DNA of 63,979 nucleotides, the filler included, from Polymyxa betae A26-41 (taxonomy: Eukaryota > Protista > Endomyxa: Phytomyxea), in NCBI GenBank assembly GCA_003693705.1. It is 5 parts of 5 records of this genome, joined end to end, with 100 filler letters (N's around TTAATTAATTAA, not from the genome) between each part and the next. Parts side by side here need not be neighbours in the genome. Positions count along the whole stretch, not along the records: positions 1 to 10,217 come from RBZT01000835.1; 4 more parts are not named here. One strand, 5' to 3'. Under the pieces are notes generated by a model, which made no database searches, was not told where the DNA came from, and saw nothing but the letters and a program-made list of their open reading frames with translations. Below, one piece after another: positions 1-10,217 of this stretch; the first letter of the stretch is position 1, and each line of letters opens with the position of its first letter. A program made the position numbers and the translations under genes.

Positions 1-107
1 TGTTTCCCCATACTAAAACTGTCGGTTTAAGATTGCCGCAACTGTAAGAAAATGTAAAAGGAAAGTGAAATAAAGGAAGTACTTGGTAACGAATGGAATG
101 AGAGAAT

Positions 108-535
108 ATGACAATCTTCATGATTGGTGGTGGGCCTATATCGTGGGCGAGTCGAAGACAAGAGTGCGCAGCCCTGTCGACGACGGAGGCCGAGTACATA
201 TCTCTCTGCGCGGCCACCAAGGAGGAGGTGTGGTTGCGTGGCCTCCTAGGTTTTCTGGGCCTCAAGCAGCAGATGGCGACTACAATTAAGCAGGATAACC
301 AATCAACCATAGCTCTGGCGGAGAACGAGTCTCTGTCCAAGAGGTCCAAACACATTGAAGTACGATATCACTACACCCGGGATAAGATTTCTGACGGGGT
401 GATTCTGCTCGAACACTGCCCAACTTCAGAAATGGTCGCGGATGTCCTGACGAAGGCCGTTCCGCTCGAAGTGTTCTCAAGACTGAGGGGCAGGTTTATG
501 TCGACGAAAATGTTCCCCGAGTCATCGGGCGGGAG
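108..535 (+). mobile_element. Ty1/copia retrotransposon 3' end (RNase H), 5'-truncated
   Basis: ORF 108..623 reads GGGPISWASRRQECAALSTTEAEY...QDNQSTI...RSKHIEVRYHY...MVADVLTK, the copia RNase H signature. A purine-rich tract (GGGCGGGAG) directly precedes the LTR. Confidence 0.92.
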
Positions 536-807
536 TGTTAGAGTGGCGCTGACCCTGGGAGCTGCAGCGGGCTGCGCCGGGGGTCCCAGTGACCCTTCAT
601 CGTACTGTGGGGCTGGCTGCTGACAACTGGCCACGTGGGCTGGCAGCCCAACCTGTCCTGCGTCCTGAATATATATAAAACCTCACTTGGTTCTTGTGTC
701 CTAATCCACCTAGATCTCGTTATGACAGCCGCCACCGATCCACCCCAAATCGACCGCAACGCGACAGATCCGCGCCGAAACGCTGGCTCCACGGAATCCA
801 ATTCTCA
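536..807 (+). mobile_element. Copia 3' LTR (TG...CA), abutting and truncating copy 1 of the secreted repeat gene
   Basis: Starts TGTTAGAG after the PPT, contains ATATATAAA and ends TTCTCA. It is homologous to 7847..8130. Homology to gene copy 2 (about 4437 onward) resumes immediately after base 807. Confidence 0.85.
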
Positions 808-1694
808 TGCCTTTCAATAGATCGCGACGAAGCGTCCGGATTGCGGTTAGTTTCCGATACAAACTGGCTATTAATATGAGCTTTTGTAATGTGCTCTTAG
901 ACAGAGCGATCTCCGTGATTTCATGTATGATAATATTGGTGACATTCAGGTCCACTGTTAATGGCTTCTTGACTCTCTTAGTAAAATCCACTACAGCGAG
1001 AAGATTGCTGAGAGAGAGCTTGCTCTTCTTTGGCATTCGGCTCCTTGTCCTGAGAACCATTTAATACAGCAGACTTCTGATAGAATTTGTTTTTACCAGA
1101 AACTGACATAGACTATCATAGTCTGTAATATCAGCAATATTATGATTCAGAAGAAAGTCCAGATTCGATCGCGGAAATGAAGCTGTTAATTGTTGCTCTT
1201 CAGGTAGTGTAGCGGTTGATGTGTGAATAGAACCCCCTAATAACAGATTCTCATTGCAGAAATCCTGAAAATAAATCTCAGTCATGAAGTGGGCAACGAG
1301 CTGCATCACATCATACAGAGGAATTTGATAACGTCTCATATGGCTCCTGAGCAGTATAATTTAGCCTGAGATATTCGCAGGATACAGCCCGTCTTACATT
1401 CAAATCGAAATCGTGAGGGAAAGAACTTCGTCTTTCAACGCCGATCTGGTCCAGGAAATTCCGGGCCTGATTGTTATGGAAAAGAGGCTGAATATCGGTA
1501 TCTTGAGCTGGTCGGTCGCTCAAAAACTATCCATTTCCCATTAATGACGAATCGACGACTTGGAGCTGATACAGAACGAGCGAGACTACATCGGCTGGCT
1601 GCTCCATCGGACATGTGATAAAATGCCCCATAAATGTCTCATTGGTAGCGTCGCATATCAGCAGTATCACGAGGAAGATGAAGGAAGAAAGCAT
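808..1694 (-). pseudogene. Secreted Cys-repeat protein family, copy 1 (3'-truncated by copia)
   Basis: ATG at 1694 gives MLSSFIFLVILLICDATNE (signal-peptide-like). Later exons give ITDYDSLCQFL and TLQKLILIASLYRK. Colinear with 4437..5340. Confidence 0.75.
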
Positions 1695-1838
1695 CTTGTG
1701 CATGACGACGAGTTTGACGAATCAATGACTCGATGAAGACCGGGGCGGCGTTTGCGCAAATATCAGTGAGAGACTTTGCGCTGATTCTGCCGATTTTGTA
1801 GTAACAGAACTCTGAGGGTGGACGAAGCAGGCAATTAT

Positions 1839-3036
1839 GGGCAAATCTTTCTGTTTGTCGACAGATAAGACGGGCAATTCAGCCTGTCCATGATTTTGCT
1901 GTTGTTTTGGCCCCTAGCAAAAGCAGCAGAAAGCGTGGCAGACCCCATTACGATGCGTCATTGCTCCTCCTGACCATATTTTTTTTATGTAGAATCAAGC
2001 GACGGACATAGAAGCGGCAGGAAGTGCCAGGAACATAGAGAGGTTGGAAAGTGGCAATGGATGAAAAGCGTCCTGCAATACCTCTCATTACCAGTAGTTG
2101 ATCACAGAAAGTGTTAAATACATAATCCACATCAGAAATAATCAGTGCTCGATGTTAAAATTTGGCGATATACAGTCCTCCCTCTCTATAACAACACTTT
2201 ATAACGACATCTCCATAGCAGCCCGAACATGTTGCAGGCCTACCTCTCTATAATGACACTCTTTATACCGACATCTCCAGAGAAGCCCGATAATGTTACC
2301 TTGAACGGATATTGTTCTATGGATTCTCTACAACCACATTGATGACATGGCGGCGCGGCCCCTCTCTGTCAGATGAGATTATTATGGGGCTCTTTGATTG
2401 TCATCTCGATCCTTAACAATACAAACTTGGTTTTCTACCTTTGCCTCATCACTCATAGACTATCAAGCTGTGGAAGGGTTAGCTTGCGTCTGGCGCTCAG
2501 ACCCGATATCAACTGGTCACTTCCACTTCGAGAAAGTGAGTCGTTCGGGATAGCCGAGAAACAGATTTGCCGAGTGTACAATGATAACATTACAGAGAAA
2601 AACTAGAATCGATGAGCTGGGTTCTGAGAGATTGGGTTATTGGGTCTGCCGCTCGACTATATTTCTAGCAGTCTAATCAAGTAAGCAAAGTGACGCTAAC
2701 GGCGACAAATCGAAGCGCATCGAAATTTGCTAAGCACTTTTAGGGATAACCCCCCAAGAACTGCCAGAAGAACTTCTTGAAGTCTCTAAAGCATTACTTT
2801 TGTATCCATTCGAGAAATGAACCTTAAAGATCACGATTCCTGTAATTGTTGCGAATTAATATTTACAAATGGTCCATAGCCCGTTAGGAACCCCATATAT
2901 TTTTATAACGAACAGTGTCGTCATAAAGACAGAGTCTTTGTAGAGAGCCAAGACTGCAGATCGACTGCTAATGACGGGCAGCATCTGCCGACAGCAGCAG
3001 CCCTTCTTATCTGCCGACAGACAGGAAGATTTGCCC
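1839..3036. mobile_element. Non-autonomous Mutator-like TIR element with 9-bp TSD
   Basis: TIRs GGGCAAATCTTTCTGTTTGTCGACAGATAAG / CTTATCTGCCGACAGACAGGAAGATTTGCCC. Flanks are GGCAATTAT (1830-1838) and GGGAATTAT (3037-3045). The paralogous empty site near 8470 has a single GACAATTAT. Confidence 0.8.
2171..2958. mobile_element. pogo/Tc1-type MITE nested in the MULE-like element
   Basis: Left end TACAGTCCTCCCTCTCTATAACAACAC with internal ATAACGACATCTCCA repeats. Degenerate inverted match at about 2915-2958. The left part recurs at about 5852-6097. Confidence 0.55.
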
Positions 3037-3163
3037 GGGAATTATGATTCTAGCGTTGTCAGCAGCAAGTGCGGTGATAACAATAAAAGCGTTTATGTAA
3101 ATAACAGCGTTTCAATGATGTAAAAAATGAGATACTGACAGTGTTATCAGACTTGTGTGATGA

Positions 3164-5340
3164 TTAGTTCATTTCTGGGATTTCAGCCGTCATTTGACAT
3201 AGAGCTGGACATTGTTCTGACAATCCAGAACAATATTTCCATCGGAATTGATCGTGGTCGATTTGATCTCCGAAAGTCTTGATAAAAAGCTCCACATCGT
3301 TATTACAATGATATTGAAGGCAGTTCAATATGGGATCCACAATATCAGTTATAAAAGCGAGTAAACTGGGGCACCATTTCAACTTTTGTTGCTGAACTTT
3401 ATCTGACAGGACTCGAATACAGTGAAGAAAAGACCTCTGAGAGATAATTAAAATGGAACAAAACCATTCCGAGTTATATCATACTGTTTGAAAACCTTTG
3501 ATTTGATATCTAAGTAAACAATCATAGAGATTGTGGTGAACAGAATTTCGAACAATTCGGATAGCACCAAGGCCATTGGTCTCTGCAATCTGCTTTTCAA
3601 ATCGACAAAGTGAACCTTCATTGATGTTGTTGGAACATTTTTGATGAAATCTGGAATGAGGAAATGGGTTTCCCCATCGAGACTGAAAAGTTTTCAGATC
3701 TTTCTGGCAGCAGAAAGTGAGACAGCATAAAATCGGGACACACAGAGCCTCCCAGGTACATCCATTAGTAGTCCATCCGTTCTCGCGAGCCCATACAAAC
3801 TTCTTGTAAAGGCGGCAAATTAGAATGAGCTTCTGCAAAGTATTCGTAGCTTGAGAAATTTCGATGGTTTCGGTCAGCTGATGCTCGGCACCATTAACAA
3901 TGATAATCAACGAATTTTTAAAACCAGAAACAGATTCATCTTTAGGTATGCAAAAACGGAGGTCTGTGAGGAACGCGCGTTCTTCTGCATCAGGCATTTT
4001 GTTCTGCAGAGAATTTAATAAGCACAAAGAGAGCGAATACGGAACCTACCAGAAAGGAGCAGAGGCTGTCGTAGTCCGTGATATCGTCTATATCGAAGTT
4101 CAGTACCCTCTGCAAATATTGTTTTCGTTTTCGGCCTGTTTCAAAATGCAGCAATCGGCGGCGTTTCCGGGATTCTGTATCCGTGAGAGCAACATTCGTA
4201 TCAGTTTCTGTAGATGTAGCAGGACGCTTTAGATGAAGCAGAGATTTTAGAGGAGAGCGAATCTGGATCTGATCATATCCACATTGATCTCCGGAGCATC
4301 TCATACTGAATCGAGAATGTGAGAACGGATTCCCCCAACGGGACTGGAATATCTCGAGATCTTTCGAGCAGCAATGTATGAGACAGCGAAATACTGGAAC
4401 ACAGACACCATTCCTCCACTCCGCCATAGATCGATTGCCTTTCAAAATATCGCGACGAAGCGTCCGGATTGCGAGTAGTTTCCGATACAGACTGGCTATT
4501 AATATGAGCTTGTGTAAAGTGCTCTTAGAGAGCGCGATCTCCGTGATTTCATGTATGATAATATTGGTGCCATTCAGATCCACTGTTAATGGCTTCTTGA
4601 CTCTCTTAAAAAAATCCCCTCTACAACCGGACAATTGCTGAGAGAGAGCTTGCTCTTCTTTGTCATTCGGTTCTTTGTCCTGAGGAATTATTTTAGAACA
4701 GCAGCCTACTGATAAATAAAAAGATGTTGTTACCAAAAACTGACATAGACTATCATAGTCTGTAATATCAGCAATATTATGATTCAGAAGAGCGTCCAGA
4801 TTCGATCGCGGAAATGATTCTGTTAATTGTTGCTCTGCAGGACGTGGAGCAGTTGATGTGTGAATAGAACCCCCTAAAGACAGATTTTCGTTGCAGAAAT
4901 CCTGAAAAGAAAATTTCAGTCAAGAAATGGGCAACATGCTGCATCACATCATACAGAGGAATTTGATAACGTCTCATATGGCTCCTGAACAAAATAATTT
5001 AGCCTGAGATATTCGCAGGACACAGCCCTCTTACATTCAAATCGAAAGCGTGAGGGGAAGAACTTCGTCTTTCAAAGCCGATTTGGTCCAGGAAATTTCT
5101 GACCTGATTGTGATGGAAAAGAGGCTGATTATCGGACTCTTGAGCTAGTCGGATATCACTTTCACTCAAAATCTATCCATTTCCCATTATTGACGAATCG
5201 ACGACTTTTTGCTGGTACAGAACGGACAAGCTTACCTCGGCTTGCTGCTCCATCGGACTATTGATGGATTGCCCCAAAAAGGTCTCATTGGTAGCGTCGC
5301 ATATCAACAGTATCACGAGGAAGATGCAGGAAGAAAGCAT
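3164..5340 (-). CDS. Secreted multi-exon protein with three Cys-rich repeat domains (copy 2, most complete)
   Basis: Exon 1 reads MLSSCIFLVILLICDATNETFLGQSINSPMEQQAE|gtaag, followed by short introns. ORFs 3990..4736, 3479..4027 and 3164..3382 each carry a P[IV]xxCLxx[CH]CxxD...[WF]G..[FI]xH..F...CS unit. Exon boundaries are approximate and intactness is not confirmed. Confidence 0.75.
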
Positions 5341-6097
5341 CTTGTGCACGACGACGATTTTGACGAGTCAAGGACTCGATGAAGGCCGTGGCGGCGTATT
5401 GCGCAAATATCAGTGAGAGACTTTACGCTGATTCTGCTGATTTTGCAGTAAAAGAAATCTGAAGGTGGACGAAGCAGGCCATTTTTGGCAAATCTTTCTG
5501 TTTGTCGACAGATAAGACGGGCGATTCAGCCTGTCCATGATTTGGCTGTTGTTTTGGCCATTAACAAAAACCAGTAGAAAGCGTGGCAGGCCACATTACG
5601 ATGACAGAATCCGATCTGCTCTTGCGAATTTCCTAATGCAAGAAACGCCGGCCGTCATTGTTCCGCTTGACTATAATTTAATGTAGAGTCAAGCGACGGA
5701 CATAGAAGCAGCAGGAAGTGCCCGAACAAAGAGAGATTAAAAGCGACAGTCGCTGGAAAGCCTCCTGAAATACCTCTCATTAGTTGATCACAGAGAATGT
5801 TACAGAAACCACATTGTTACTAGTCAGTGCAAAATGTTAACATTTGCCTATATACATTCCTCCCTCTCTATAACAACACACCTTATAACGACATCTCCAT
5901 AGAAGCCCGATAATGTTACTATGTACGGATATTGTTCTATGGATTCTCTATAACCACATCAATGACATGGCGGCGCGGCCCATCTCTGTCAGATGAGATT
6001 CTTATGGGGCTCTTTGATTCTCATCTCGATCCTTAACAATACAAAACTGGTTTTCTACATTTGTCTCATCCCTCATAGACTCTCAAGCTGTGGAAGG
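4437..6097. repeat. Tandem segmental duplicate of 808..2478 (gene 5' half, upstream region, left part of MULE and MITE)
   Basis: Colinear high similarity by eye over about 1.65 kb. Confidence 0.85.
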
Positions 6098-7138
6098 TGG
6101 AAAATCGAGACTGCAATTCATTACAGTCGTGACGGAATTTTTTGGCTGTTTCTTTTACTTTTTACCTTTTATTTATTGTACTACTTTACAGACCCTTTAT
6201 AGCTTTAAACTTCTCCATGTTATTTTCCGACTCAATTTTTATCGTTCTTGGTATGTGAACTGGCCCGATTATGTCCTGTTCGGACTCTTTGAGAAGAACA
6301 GTATTTGCAGTCTCAGCGGTTTTCAGAATCCTCGACCTTGCATTCATTGAGTTGTGCCTTTACGACCAGATCTGTGGGTCATGATCGATTTCGTGGCCGG
6401 TTGTTGCACCTTTCTTGCAAGGTCATCTGATTGGTCCCATTCTTGGATTTCGTTCGAGTGACTCGGGATAAAATGCCGCTCTACAGTAAAGTCTCGCTGG
6501 AGCTCAGCAAGTTTGTTGGTGATTCATTCATAGTTGAGCGCAATTCACAAGGGTCTAATCTCTCAGCAAAAATTGTATTTAAAACCCTAACCGCAAGAAA
6601 ACTCCTGGAAACCAGTCGACTATTTCAACGAGTGCAAAATATAAACGATGATTCTGGTTTAAGAGAGATTCCGTGAAATGTGTTGTTTGAGCAGCATTAA
6701 CAGCAGATAGAGCAGGATATTGTCCAGTATGTCCAGGACAGTATTTCAGTTGAAATTGATAATGATCTATATGACCTCCAAATATATGCGAGAAAGAATT
6801 TTCAGTATCGGAATAAAAACTCCGTTATACATTGCTGTAAATGAATTCGTCATAAGCTTTATAAAAACCTTTAAAGCCATTAAAACGGTCTTATGACCCC
6901 GGATCTCAATTTCGGAGAGTGATCTGTGATTTCAAATGCTTTATAACGAGGTCAAAATTGGACGTCGCATCCAATTCTCGGAGGAACCCTTAGGTCGAAT
7001 TTGGCGCTGAATGAGGTTGAACAGGATTTGAAGACAGAACTTGAGGAAAAGGATTTGTTGATGAGCGATGACCACTTTATTGATTTTTATAATCCGAATA
7101 ACCATATTTATGGTATTTATGCCCTTTAGAAATTTTCA

Positions 7139-7246
7139 AAGGGTTGCGCCTGACTCTTCGTTGGAGTGAAAGTTTAAAGGGTTGCGCCTGATTCTTCGTT
7201 GCAGTGAAATTTTTAAGGGTTGAGCCGTATTCTTCGTTACAGTGTG
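7139..7246. repeat. 38-bp minisatellite, about 3 copies
   Basis: AAGGGTTGCGCCTGA(C/T)TCTTCGTTG(G/C)AGTGAAA... repeated head-to-tail with no spacers. Confidence 0.8.
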
Positions 7247-7846
7247 ATAACGTGGGTGGCGCCTCCTTATCATTGACATTACATAGATAGAGACACTCCT
7301 CTGTTTGCACTCCATATTGGCATCATTAACATACACATGGCATGGCGAGCACTGCTGCCGAACGTAGACACGGATGGCGACCAGAGCATCGAGAGGCTTT
7401 TCGACAATACATGTTCCAGAATGACGATTTGAAGGCGCTGACAGGCGGTGTTGTGAAATCGAATTGTCAGATCTTGGCAAATATTGATACGAACTTTTTA
7501 GGCGGACGTGTTCACTCGATCAGAGAGAACCTTTTTAAGGTTAATGTAATTTAAAATCGTATTTATGGCTTCTTTGAATGCAGTTTATAGAAAAGGGTTC
7601 GAATATCGCATCGGTTTTGATCATGGAGCAAGGAGCTCCTGAATGCGACAACAATCAAATGTCCAGAAAAGGGCAAGGTCATCATTACACTATACAGCTG
7701 GGTAAGCCTGTTGCAATTAACCCTGTCAAGCGAGCAATTAAGGGGCCCAATGAAGAAACTGCTCGAACCGAAATTTTACTCACAGTTCGAAAACGATAAT
7801 GCTGACTAAATGGAATCACTGTGATTTGGTATCTGTATGTAGTTGC

Positions 7847-8130
7847 TGTTAGAGTGGCGCTGACCCTGGGAACTGCAGCGGGCTGCGCCGGGGGTCCCAG
7901 TGACCATTCATCGTACTGTGAGGCTGGCTGCTGACAACTGGCCACGTGGGCCTGCAGCCCAACCTATCCTGCGTCCTGAATATATATACAATTTCACTTG
8001 GCTACTTTATCCTAATCGTTTGTATCGCGATCGTAGACAGCATGAGCGACAACGAAGCGAACAACACGGGAGCGGATCAGCGATCCGGTTCGAACCACGG
8101 CTACACGCAATCTACAACATCACCTTCTCA
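7847..8130 (+). mobile_element. Solo copia LTR with near-perfect 5-bp TSD
   Basis: TGTTAGAGTGGCGC...TTCTCA, homologous to 536..807. Flanked by GTTGC and GTTTC. Confidence 0.85.
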
Positions 8131-8189
8131 GTTTCAATAAAAGTGTACAACTTTTTGAAATGTTACTGTGTAATGGAAATTTCACTTTT

Positions 8190-8334
8190 CTCGCGACATC
8201 CGTTGAACTTTCCTCACCTTCCTGGTACAGAACGATCGAGCTTAGCTCGGCTGGCTGCTCCATCGGACTATTGTTAAATTGCGCCACAAAGGTCTCATTC
8301 GTAGCGTCGCATATCAGCAGTAGGAAGAAAGCAT
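8190..8334 (-). pseudogene. Secreted Cys-repeat family, copy 3 (exon 1 remnant only)
   Basis: Matches the exon 1 and first-intron region of copies 1 and 2, with a deletion in the signal-peptide region. Confidence 0.65.
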
Positions 8335-8599
8335 CTTGTTCATGACTGACGAGTTTGACGAGTCAATCACACGATGAACTCCCGGCCCCGTATTGAGCAG
8401 AAATCAGTGAGAGACTTTCCGCTGACTCTGTCGATTTTGTAGTAACAGAACACTGAAGTAAGACGAAGTAGACAATTATATTTTTTGCGTTGTCAGCAGC
8501 AAGTGCGGTGATAACATCAATAAAAGCGTTTATGTAAATAACAGCATTTCAAAGATGCAAAGAAATTGACCTGACAGTGCTATCAGACTTATGTGAAGA

Positions 8600-9968
8600 T
8601 TAGTTCATTTCTGGGAGTTCAACCGTCATTTGACATAGAGCTGGACATTGTTCTGACAATCCAGAACAATATTTCCATCGGAATTGATCGTGGTCGATTT
8701 GATCTCCAACAATCTTGGTAAAAAGCTCCACATCGTTATTACAATGATATTGAAGGCAGTTCAATATGGGATTCACAATATCAGTCATATAAGCGAGAAA
8801 ACCGGAGCACCATTTTAACTTCAAAATCCAACAAAACCAATCCGAGTTATATCATACTGTTTGAAAACCTTTGATTTGATATCTAAGTAAACAATCATAG
8901 AGATTGTGGTGAACAGAATCTCGAACAATTAGAATACCACCAAAGCCATCGGTCTCTGCAATCTGCTTTTCAAATCCACAAAGTGACCATTCAGTGATGT
9001 GGGAACATTTCTCAAAAAATCTGGAATGTGGAAATGGGCTTCCCCATCGAGATTGAAAAGTTCTCAGATCTTTCTGGCAGCAGATAGTGAGACAGCAAAA
9101 AATCGGGACACAGAGAGACTCCCAGTTCCATCCATTACCAACCCATCCGTTCTCGCGAGCCCATATAAACTTCTTGTATAAGCGGCAAATTAGAATGAGC
9201 TTCTGCAAAGTATTCGTAGCTTGACAAATTTCACTGGTTTCTGTCAACTGATGATCGACACCATTAACATTGATAATCAACGAATTGCTGGAACCAGGAA
9301 TAGCTTCATATTTCGATATGCAAAAACGGGGGTCATTGAGGAACGCGAATTCTGCTGCATCAGGCTGTTTGTTCTACAGAGAATTTGAAAAGCACAGATG
9401 AGAGCGTATCCGAAACCTACCAGAAAGAAGCAGAGGCTGTCGTAGTCCGTGATATCATTTATATCGAAGTTCAGTACCCTCTGCAAATATTATTTTCGTT
9501 TTCGGCCATTTTCAAACCAGACTCGGCGGCGTTTCCGGGATTCTTTATCCGTGAGAGCAACATTCGCATCAGTTTCTGTAGATGTAACAGGACGCTTTAG
9601 AGGAAGCAGAGATTTTAGAGGAGAGCGATTCTGGGTCTGATTATATCCACACTGATCTCCGCAGCATCTCAATTTGAATCGAGAATGTGAGAACGGATTC
9701 CCCCAACGGGACTGGAACATCTCGAGATCTTTCGAGCAGCAATGTATGAGACAGCGTAATACTGGAACACAGACAGCATTCCTCCACTCCGCCATAGATC
9801 GATTGCCTTTCAAAATATCGCAACGAACGGTTCGGATCGTGAAATGTTTCCGATACAGACTGGCTATTAATATGAGCTTGTGTAATGTGCTCTTAGACAG
9901 AGCGATCTCCGTGACTTCATGTATGATAATATTGGTGCCATTCAGATCCACTGTTAATGGCATCTTGA
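8600..9968 (-). pseudogene. Secreted Cys-repeat family, copy 4 (5' part cut by an LTR insertion)
   Basis: ORFs 9490..9963, 8852..9280 and 8600..8824 are paralogous to copy 2. Homology stops exactly at the LTR boundary 9968/9969. Confidence 0.8.
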
Positions 9969-10213
9969 TGTAACGTATTTCAGCTGGGGCTGGTAGGTTT
10001 TTAGCTGGAACACGAATTCCACTAGGAAAGTTGGTGAAATCGAATTGGTAGTAATAAATCCGATTTTATTATGAATAAACACAGCACACACATTCTCGCT
10101 ACGAACGCCGTGGATGTCGTGCCTCAGCCTCGTTGATGGTCAGGTCGTACTGGACCGGACTGGGAGTCACGACAGCAGCCAGTCAGAAAAGAGGTACGCC
10201 TCACTCCCCCCCT
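9969..10213 (-). mobile_element. 3' LTR plus polypurine tract of an LTR retrotransposon
   Basis: On the minus strand: AGGGGGGGAG (PPT), then TGAGG...GTTACA (10203..9969). Abuts the broken gene copy 4. Confidence 0.7.
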
Positions 10214-10217
10214 AGTC

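Follow-up and report, generated by a model that had tools for sequence, protein, structure and literature searches.

A three-unit protein family of Polymyxa betae with a predicted signal peptide shares its Cys/His domain with the C-terminus of Crypton-like tyrosine recombinases

Cryptons and their domestication are already known, as are, in principle, effector families derived from transposons: the EKA (AVRk1/AVRa10) family of powdery mildew, for one, derives from ORF1 of a long interspersed nuclear element (LINE). In yeast, Gcr1, Msn1, Hot1 and Cbf2/Ndc10 derive from the C-terminal GCR1_C domain of CryptonF, and the vertebrate DUF3504 genes derive from the Crypton tyrosine recombinase (YR) domain (PMC3212892, Kojima and Jurka 2011). 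CryptonS elements, found in oomycetes and a diatom, carry a 'conserved C-terminal region' that is not GCR1_C (PMC3212892), and tandem (L)WY effectors of filamentous pathogens are mentioned in a structure-based secretome study (PMC12503489). Here we describe a gene family found in a window of 63,979 nucleotides (nt) of the Polymyxa betae A26-41 genome (GenBank assembly GCA_003693705.1), whose reference member, paralogue B, is a complete coding region on the minus strand (3164..5340) encoding a signal-like N-terminus followed by three Cys/His repeat units. P. betae, which transmits rhizomania, lives as an intracellular parasite in sugar-beet roots; the plasmodiophorids, which include the organisms of clubroot, powdery scab and rhizomania transmission, are major crop parasites, and to our knowledge their effectors are almost unknown. 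The species is an obligate biotroph (PMC6328671). We consider it likely that the tail of a Crypton-like element was recycled here into a secreted candidate effector family of about 100 genes.

The first-pass annotation had aligned the repeat by eye with the tail of a YR element. The copy that it quoted lies at ~12160-12400 of contig C893 in the assembly (G000; 1,001 contigs, 27,085,814 bases), about 500 bp downstream of a YR box (G-T-H-S-L-R-K-T-G ... A-R-H ... Y-Y), and is indeed broken by the one frameshift that the alignment had needed; both strings quoted from the repeats were found in their place on the minus strand, the third unit within 3212-3382. Unbroken copies of the tail are present on contigs C834 (90% DNA identity), C816 and C637, and the alignment stood up when a hidden Markov model built from family units only was compared with intact tails, matching that of C834 with 29.8 bits and that of C816 with 18.6 bits. 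The broken C893 copy alone scored 8.7 bits, so that the case for homology rests on the intact copies. Using hhalign, 41 family units aligned with three local tails (probability 96.9%, E 1.4e-10, 86 columns), and family units aligned with 79 tails from public data (probability 98.95%, E 1e-17, 96 of ~115 columns). Single-sequence searches of the whole genome were reciprocal: the C816 tail recovered unit 3 of the window at E 4.8e-4, plus dozens of family members, and unit 3 recovered six YR tails at E 1e-5 to 2e-4. At the level of sequence, the repeat unit and the C-terminal domain of a Crypton-like YR lineage are homologous on firm statistical grounds.

AlphaFold2 gave confident models of both domains, with a predicted local distance difference test score (pLDDT) of 84.2 and a predicted template modelling score (pTM) of 0.79 for unit 1, and a pLDDT of 88.6 and pTM of 0.78 for the C816 tail. 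Read through the hhalign register, the helix order is the same in the two models, in keeping with the kinship first proposed, and nine identical PDB chains occur in the top-50 lists of both (of 48,161), every match being at background level. The Cys/His domain matched no family in a Pfam scan of all exons, YR pieces and public relatives. GCR1_C (PF12550) gave no match at E <= 1 to family units and YR tails or at E <= 0.01 to full-length YR proteins; the domain is not of the GCR1_C kind found in fungal Cryptons. DUF3504 (PF12012) had no hmmscan match in YR pieces or full-length proteins, nor in a genome-wide search, though the controls of that search could not have given signal.

We compared four public sequencing runs against positions 3100-5500, among them one DNA run (X1) and two runs from two studies (X3 and X8) whose records name organisms different from the DNA source and carry no library label; the raw polyA RNA run X23 had no reads that aligned here. 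Contigs of X3 and X8 skip six short stretches, all GT..AG on the minus strand, whilst X1 covers the region without any such joint; because the joints are canonical, X3 and X8 were taken as RNA-derived. Intron 1 (5173..5235, 63 nt) separates the signal exon from exon 2, and its joint, linking 5172 to 5236, is carried by X3 and X8 contigs whose shorter sides measure 109 and 139 letters. Intron 2 (4985..5034, 50 nt) and intron 3 (4902..4954, 53 nt) are likewise seen in X3/X8 contigs, and are followed by intron 4 (4680..4733, 54 nt). Intron 5 (4004..4049, 46 nt) marks the boundary between units 1 and 2, its joint from 4003 to 4050 being present in two contigs of X3 and in X8, and intron 6 (3437..3484, 48 nt; joint 3436 to 3485) is supported by both runs. 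Excision of the six introns yields a single open frame of 1863 nt (620 residues), from an ATG at 5340 to a stop codon at 3164-3166, with an in-frame TGA at 5368-5370 upstream of the ATG but within the transcribed part; the limits drawn at the outset, 3164 and 5340, thus coincide exactly with the stop codon and the first in-frame ATG. Every pair of neighbouring exons is linked by overlapping contigs. The region 5340..3164 on the minus strand is an expressed, spliced seven-exon gene. Its spliced contigs occur in two runs from two studies and, the organism being an obligate biotroph (PMC6328671), this places expression at some stage of infection. As exon 1 and the repeats are connected in the RNA-type contigs, within one 620-residue frame, the unconnected signal exon of which the first-pass annotation had warned does not apply. 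One X8 contig also skips 82 nt at 4394-4477 inside unit 1, with non-canonical TG..GT ends; this skip probably arose when two paralogues were joined in assembly, and would not represent an intron.

The encoded protein begins with 16 signal-like residues (5293..5340), comprising a short n-region, a hydrophobic core of 10 residues and C-D-A before the likely cleavage point; the core and the small -3/-1 end would suit a putative cleavable signal peptide. The next ~130 residues are weakly conserved, and a DITDYDSLCxFL motif closes them immediately ahead of intron 4. The rest of the protein carries three copies of a helical Cys/His domain of ~110 residues. Exon 5 (4050..4679, 210 residues) is repeat unit 1 and consists of the Cys/His domain, a linker, a basic stretch and a second DITDYDSLCxFL motif. 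The core of its domain (4257..4613, 119 residues) has the pattern C-x5-C-x3-C-C ... W-G-x-x-F-x-H ... C-x4-10-C, and the linker holds a bipartite basic stretch resembling a nuclear localisation signal (NLS), RKRRR-x8-RKRK (4122..4169). Unit 2 is exon 6 (3485..4003, 173 residues; domain core 3626-3919) and unit 3 is exon 7 (3164..3436, 90 residues plus stop; core 3212-3382, containing VDPILNCLQYHCNNDVELF), all on the minus strand. Unit 3 is shorter and more divergent, and retains the C-x3-H-C form of the YR tails. A K/R-rich stretch stands ahead of the domain in family members and in YR tails alike, and a recurring plan of basic stretch, DYxSLCxFL motif, intron and then unit is found throughout the family. 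Of the 22 loci with enough flanking sequence, 12 have, 690-950 nt ahead of their first unit, a hydrophobic starting exon that opens with an ATG and has an A-x-A-type end, as compared to candidates at 2 of 22 on the control strand; the loci that conserve this exon include paralogues only 40-47% identical in the domain.

The domain has a consistent signature across 176 copies from outside the family. It opens with a K/R-rich stretch, followed by G-x-[FN]-D-L ... R, E-K-L and L-T-x-x-A-R-x-F; its middle reads P-[IV]-x-x-C (99%) -L-x-x-H (97%), D-x-x-x-F (94%) and W; and it closes with F-x-H-S-x-F, C (91%) -x-G and C (84%). These copies therefore hold a four-ligand Cys/His set (C in 99%, H four residues later in 97%, then C in 91% and C in 84%), with an additional H in 60%. 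In units 1 and 2 of Polymyxa a C replaces the H and two extra Cys are present, whilst unit 3, together with units 2 and 3 of the Spongospora subterranea relative described below, retains the H. A helix carrying a C-x3-H pair, a knuckle of the form C-x-G-x(n)-C and an H-to-C swap that preserves a ligand point to a structural zinc site, and a zinc ion is probably bound by the conserved C-x3-H ... C-x-G-x(n)-C residues. The CHC2 zinc-finger model matched a domain copy from the diatom Seminavis robusta below threshold (17.3 bits; cut-off 24.9), and confidence in the models, which contain no metal, is lowest in the ligand-like region.

The tail belongs to a dispersed, multi-copy YR element, with 25 DNA matches on many contigs and at least 12 loci with long tail matches. 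C893, C816 and C637 each show a recognisable H-x-x-R ... H ... Y box. On C816, a tail open reading frame (ORF) of 277 residues directly follows the YR box ORF. The C637 element belongs to a family only 30% identical in protein, and its tail ends with the same motif; here the YR and tail exons are separated by a 48-nt GT...TTTCAG stretch that looks like an ordinary intron, and another change of frame is a true frameshift. As the tail exon follows the YR exon across this intron-like stretch, the tail belongs integrally to the YR gene. Between the unrelated transposons that flank them, the elements on C637 and C893 measure about 2.5-3.3 kb. Pfam gave no match to reverse transcriptase, RNase H or DDE domains in YR proteins of 590-1004 residues or in the C637 and C816 ORFs. 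We call the tail-bearing element Crypton-like for its YR catalytic set, its multiple copies and this lack of another transposition enzyme; the copies in this genome are mostly decayed.

Other YR families are also present. Six YR loci found with PF00589 (on C723, C946, C641, C978, C829 and C18) have no Cys/His domain within ±5 kb, and three of them (C723:14456-14755, C946:6828-7127 and C641:58301-58600; L031-L033, L037-L039) are YR genes above the Pfam Phage_integrase cut-off that lack the Cys/His tail, so that the genome holds at least two lineages of YR elements. The surroundings of the C893 element (G000:C893:5000-14999; L044) are a transposon graveyard, in which we recognised by eye Tc1/mariner-like (2824-4092, minus) and PIF/Harbinger-like (8283-9641) ORFs and a copia-like piece (7665-8189, minus), with a SET-domain-like ORF (70-765, minus) adjoining them.

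A profile of the local tails was searched against 1.84 billion proteins and matched 206 at E <= 1e-3, many of them 590-1004 residues long with the matched region at the very C-terminus. Tail-bearing proteins include some from Plasmodiophora brassicae, named 'Tyr recombinase domain-containing' at NCBI, others from the chytrid Zopfochytrium polystomum, and clusters of ORFs of ~700 residues on metagenomic contigs of 2-7 kb, some termed 'integrase' by their source. A full-length alignment of 19 tail-bearing YR proteins (24-30% identity) has invariant R298, K333, R435-H436 and Y445 and near-invariant H410 and R413, and in the tail the P, C, H, F and C are invariant. Matches of the full-length proteins to integrase in Pfam and to a PDB profile of Cre were weak, Cre being sub-significant (E 0.17-0.7). 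The three-unit, signal-bearing family is known by name only from two plasmodiophorids. In Spongospora subterranea, A0A0H5REK9 has 639 residues, a signal-like start, the DYDSLC motif and three units; with such orthologues in Spongospora, the family predates the split from Polymyxa and is not confined to P. betae. A secretome built with SignalP includes this protein, whose mean pLDDT there is 55.9 (PMC12503489, supplement 1), and the same structure-based study reports no large effector cluster in P. betae (PMC12503489). The low pLDDT may be the reason why the family went unclustered and unnoticed.

A quick maximum-likelihood tree of the domain (216 rows, 101 columns; unrooted, with midpoint or arbitrary rooting) gathers all family rows into a single clade with the units of Spongospora and YR tails of the Polymyxa type, with a Shimodaira-Hasegawa-like approximate likelihood ratio test (SH-aLRT) value of 86, inside a much wider spread of YR tails. 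The direction of transfer is not given by an unrooted tree alone. Other multi-unit proteins group with different YR tails, among them a two-unit protein that also bears a signal. A eukaryotic contig of the GROS21 metagenome (L061, 471-4062) holds three adjacent, apparently intronless genes, of which those of 472 and 469 residues encode a signal-like start and three Cys/His units, the middle one having 238 residues; genes for a hybrid histidine kinase, SNAPC3 and an ABCG-type transporter are their neighbours. It seems that a second secreted multi-unit family, apparently of separate origin, is present in this eukaryote. In Seminavis robusta, a protein named 'helicase' (CAB9497490.1; P0169 / P0145) combines two helicase-associated (HA) domains with two Cys/His copies. 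Similar multi-unit proteins thus seem to have arisen separately elsewhere.

Within its own genome, the core of unit 1 returned 310 first-look candidates, and the 150 matches that were scored all had E <= 3.5e-19 and were typically paired ~690 bp apart. Unit 3 was found at ~100 genomic places at E <= 2e-8 and, since it occurs once per gene, the family comprises about 100 genes, pseudogenes included, which often lie in clusters on one contig. The copies differ by 50-60% at the protein level and conserve the seven-exon structure. Pairwise ratios of nonsynonymous to synonymous change (dN/dS) were 0.4-1.0 for the closest paralogues, above 1 for the short unit 3 and ~0.4 for more distant pairs, a pattern of fast evolution with residual constraint. 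A word-indexed protein search with exon 5 returned one match, a metagenomic fragment, a low yield that reflects the length window of the tool, and a feature search of a protein atlas gave no usable match.

Taken together, this analysis favours the following explanation. In an ancestor of Polymyxa and Spongospora, a transposase tail with a basic nuclear-targeting stretch would have been copied into a host gene, triplicated and set behind a signal peptide, with strong later expansion in Polymyxa. In the transposase itself, the basic stretch and a zinc-stabilised helical domain downstream of the catalytic core would most plausibly serve nuclear import and the binding of DNA or of the synapse, the domain probably binding DNA or mediating assembly. 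The plasmodiophorid plasmodium sits directly in the host cytoplasm, so that family proteins exported from it would reach the host cytosol and then, through their NLS-like stretches, the host nucleus, where they would act as chromatin- or DNA-directed effectors. Zinc and nucleic-acid binding, secretion and host-nuclear action are predictions drawn from sequence features. The first-pass annotation had proposed that a transposon domain was captured, tandemly multiplied and given a signal peptide; the homology, the three units and the spliced signal-like exon uphold this proposal, and the direction of capture is favoured only. A broader version, for which we would make a tentative case at most, holds that a widespread Crypton lineage uses the tail as its module for DNA recognition, that the tail was turned into secreted DNA- or chromatin-binding effectors directed at the host nucleus (three modules each, in about 100 diversifying Polymyxa paralogues), and that such co-option was repeated independently in plasmodiophorids, the GROS21 eukaryote and the diatom HA-domain fusion.

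Several observations weigh against the favoured explanation. The n-region of the signal-like peptide has no positive charge. The RNA origin of X3 and X8 is deduced from canonical joints in unlabelled runs, and all exons are spanned by no single contig. Neither model matched a solved or Atlas structure above background (Foldseek against the PDB, a wide VIA-align comparison and an ESM Atlas shape search; best Z 5.1 and 4.2); with confident models that match no known structure, function cannot be read from the fold. YR-tail matches are mostly metagenomic, with no taxon assigned, and the domain tree is weak, having ~100 columns, a quick search, no root and an SH-aLRT of only 86 on its key branch. 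One cluster of tail-bearing YR proteins of ~706 residues (P0190; 38 members on metagenomic contigs of 2-7 kb) includes a copy filed under a bacterial metagenome-assembled genome (Fimbriimonas sp.), a placement that reflects either faulty binning or a lineage that is not exclusively eukaryotic.

A chance or convergent likeness of two short Cys-rich motifs was a fair concern when the match had been made by eye across a frameshift and the broken copy scored 8.7 bits. An E of 1e-17 over 96 columns, reciprocal genome-wide matches, matching helix order in two independent high-confidence models and nine PDB chains shared between their top-50 lists leave it a negligible probability, and at the sequence level chance resemblance is refuted. 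That a repetitive mobile element carries the three-unit genes, as cargo or as its own ORFs, would account for their copy number and for the retrotransposon fragments beside them in the window, but is very improbable: protein divergence of 50-60% under a conserved seven-exon structure, DNA repeats confined to local tandem paralogues, spliced transcripts, dN/dS of ~0.4 at deeper divergence and orthologues in another genus all argue otherwise. Transfer in the opposite direction, by which a Crypton-like element acquired the domain from a pre-existing host gene of the family, would be consistent with the unrooted tree, which taken alone gives no direction, and transposons are known to capture host fragments. 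Yet the tail is conserved at the end of complete YR proteins from P. brassicae, from a chytrid and from many metagenomic sources, and these share only 24-30% identity as whole proteins, whereas the named three-unit family is known from two plasmodiophorids only, and with the family as donor the Cryptons of chytrids, Plasmodiophora and many other eukaryotes would have descended from a plasmodiophorid gene. The retention of the C-x3-H of the YR tails (97% H) in Spongospora units 2 and 3 and Polymyxa unit 3 also marks Polymyxa units 1 and 2 as derived. We therefore hold the reverse transfer to be improbable, and transfer from transposon to gene, favoured because the tail ends full-length YR proteins in distant eukaryotes, to be highly probable.

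The main rival concerns function, and proposes that the transposon-derived family acts inside the parasite, in the nucleus, endoplasmic reticulum (ER) or nuclear envelope, in chromatin regulation or in the restraint of Cryptons, the N-terminus being an anchor or ER-entry signal. Domesticated transposase domains are usually nuclear regulators (PMC3212892), the NLS-like stretches could simply have been inherited from the transposase, and the Crypton copies seen in the genome are decayed. Set against this, the signal-like A-x-A-type exon is kept across divergent paralogues and in Spongospora, and ~100 copies, clustering, dN/dS up to about 1 and pseudogenes fit an effector-type family better; we regard an internal role as unlikely, although it carries more weight than any other rival.

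Positions 1-10217 of the window are one whole contig, the minus strand of which carries paralogues A, B and C head-to-tail, plus a remnant of a signal exon. Paralogue A (710..1703) retains exon 1 through the first half of unit 1 only, is 87-92% identical to B (direct repeats; tblastn), and is truncated beside a retrotransposon fragment. A lone signal-peptide exon with its upstream sequence remains at 8246..8323 (repeat 8219-8479). Paralogue C (8600..10217) comprises units 3, 2 and 1, its 5' exons lying past the contig end; the linker that follows its unit 1 is interrupted by an in-frame stop (9490-9492), and its dN/dS against B is about 0.9-1.3. In-frame stops were found in several close paralogues (paralogue C and loci L003 and L005), which implies that part of the family is pseudogenised. 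Copia-like fragments are interspersed among the paralogues (108-623; repeat at 536-706 and 7847-8017). On the plus strand, 108-623 was recognised by eye as the 3' end of a Ty1/copia-type pol gene, in the RNase H region, and had no Pfam match; the sequence downstream of this pol end is present twice (92% identical), each copy abutting a truncated piece of a family gene. This arrangement suggests that retrotransposon insertion or recombination broke up the paralogue array.

No description of the domain or the family was found in the searchable literature. What is new is the domain, its triplication behind a signal peptide, the scale of its expansion, its rhizarian host and a hint of recurrent co-option. 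With signal-like and nuclear-targeting motifs, the ~100 genes, roughly 1% of a 27-Mb genome, constitute a concrete new candidate set, and a domain, unnamed so far and modelled with confidence, is defined for a widespread Crypton-like lineage. Its predicted fate would be that of a transposase accessory domain multiplied into a secreted multi-domain family in place of a lone nuclear regulator.

Compared with known systems, the resemblance to Crinklers and tandem (L)WY effectors is one of design only: in these too a signal peptide precedes repeated or modular helical units, with an NLS in Crinklers, but no relation in sequence or detectable fold connects them to the P. betae family. The EKA family is likewise a very large candidate-effector family of an obligate biotroph derived from a transposon protein; it stems, however, from a retrotransposon ORF, is not known to have signal peptides and stays linked to its element, whereas in P. 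betae a DNA-transposon tail forms part of a normal spliced gene of several exons that also encodes a predicted signal peptide. CryptonS elements resemble those described here in being YR-only with a conserved, unnamed C-terminal region, and the Cys/His domain also occurs in a diatom protein; the present elements differ in coming from Rhizaria and a chytrid, and not from oomycetes and a diatom. Compared by description only, the Cys/His tail may be the 'conserved C-terminal region' of CryptonS. Closest are the Crypton-derived host genes, which also re-use a domain of a YR DNA transposon, in the yeast case one that is C-terminal and non-catalytic as well. Those genes are single-copy nuclear regulators, whereas the P. 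betae domain, which is neither GCR1_C nor DUF3504, is triplicated in each gene, stands behind a predicted signal peptide and is carried by ~100 genes.

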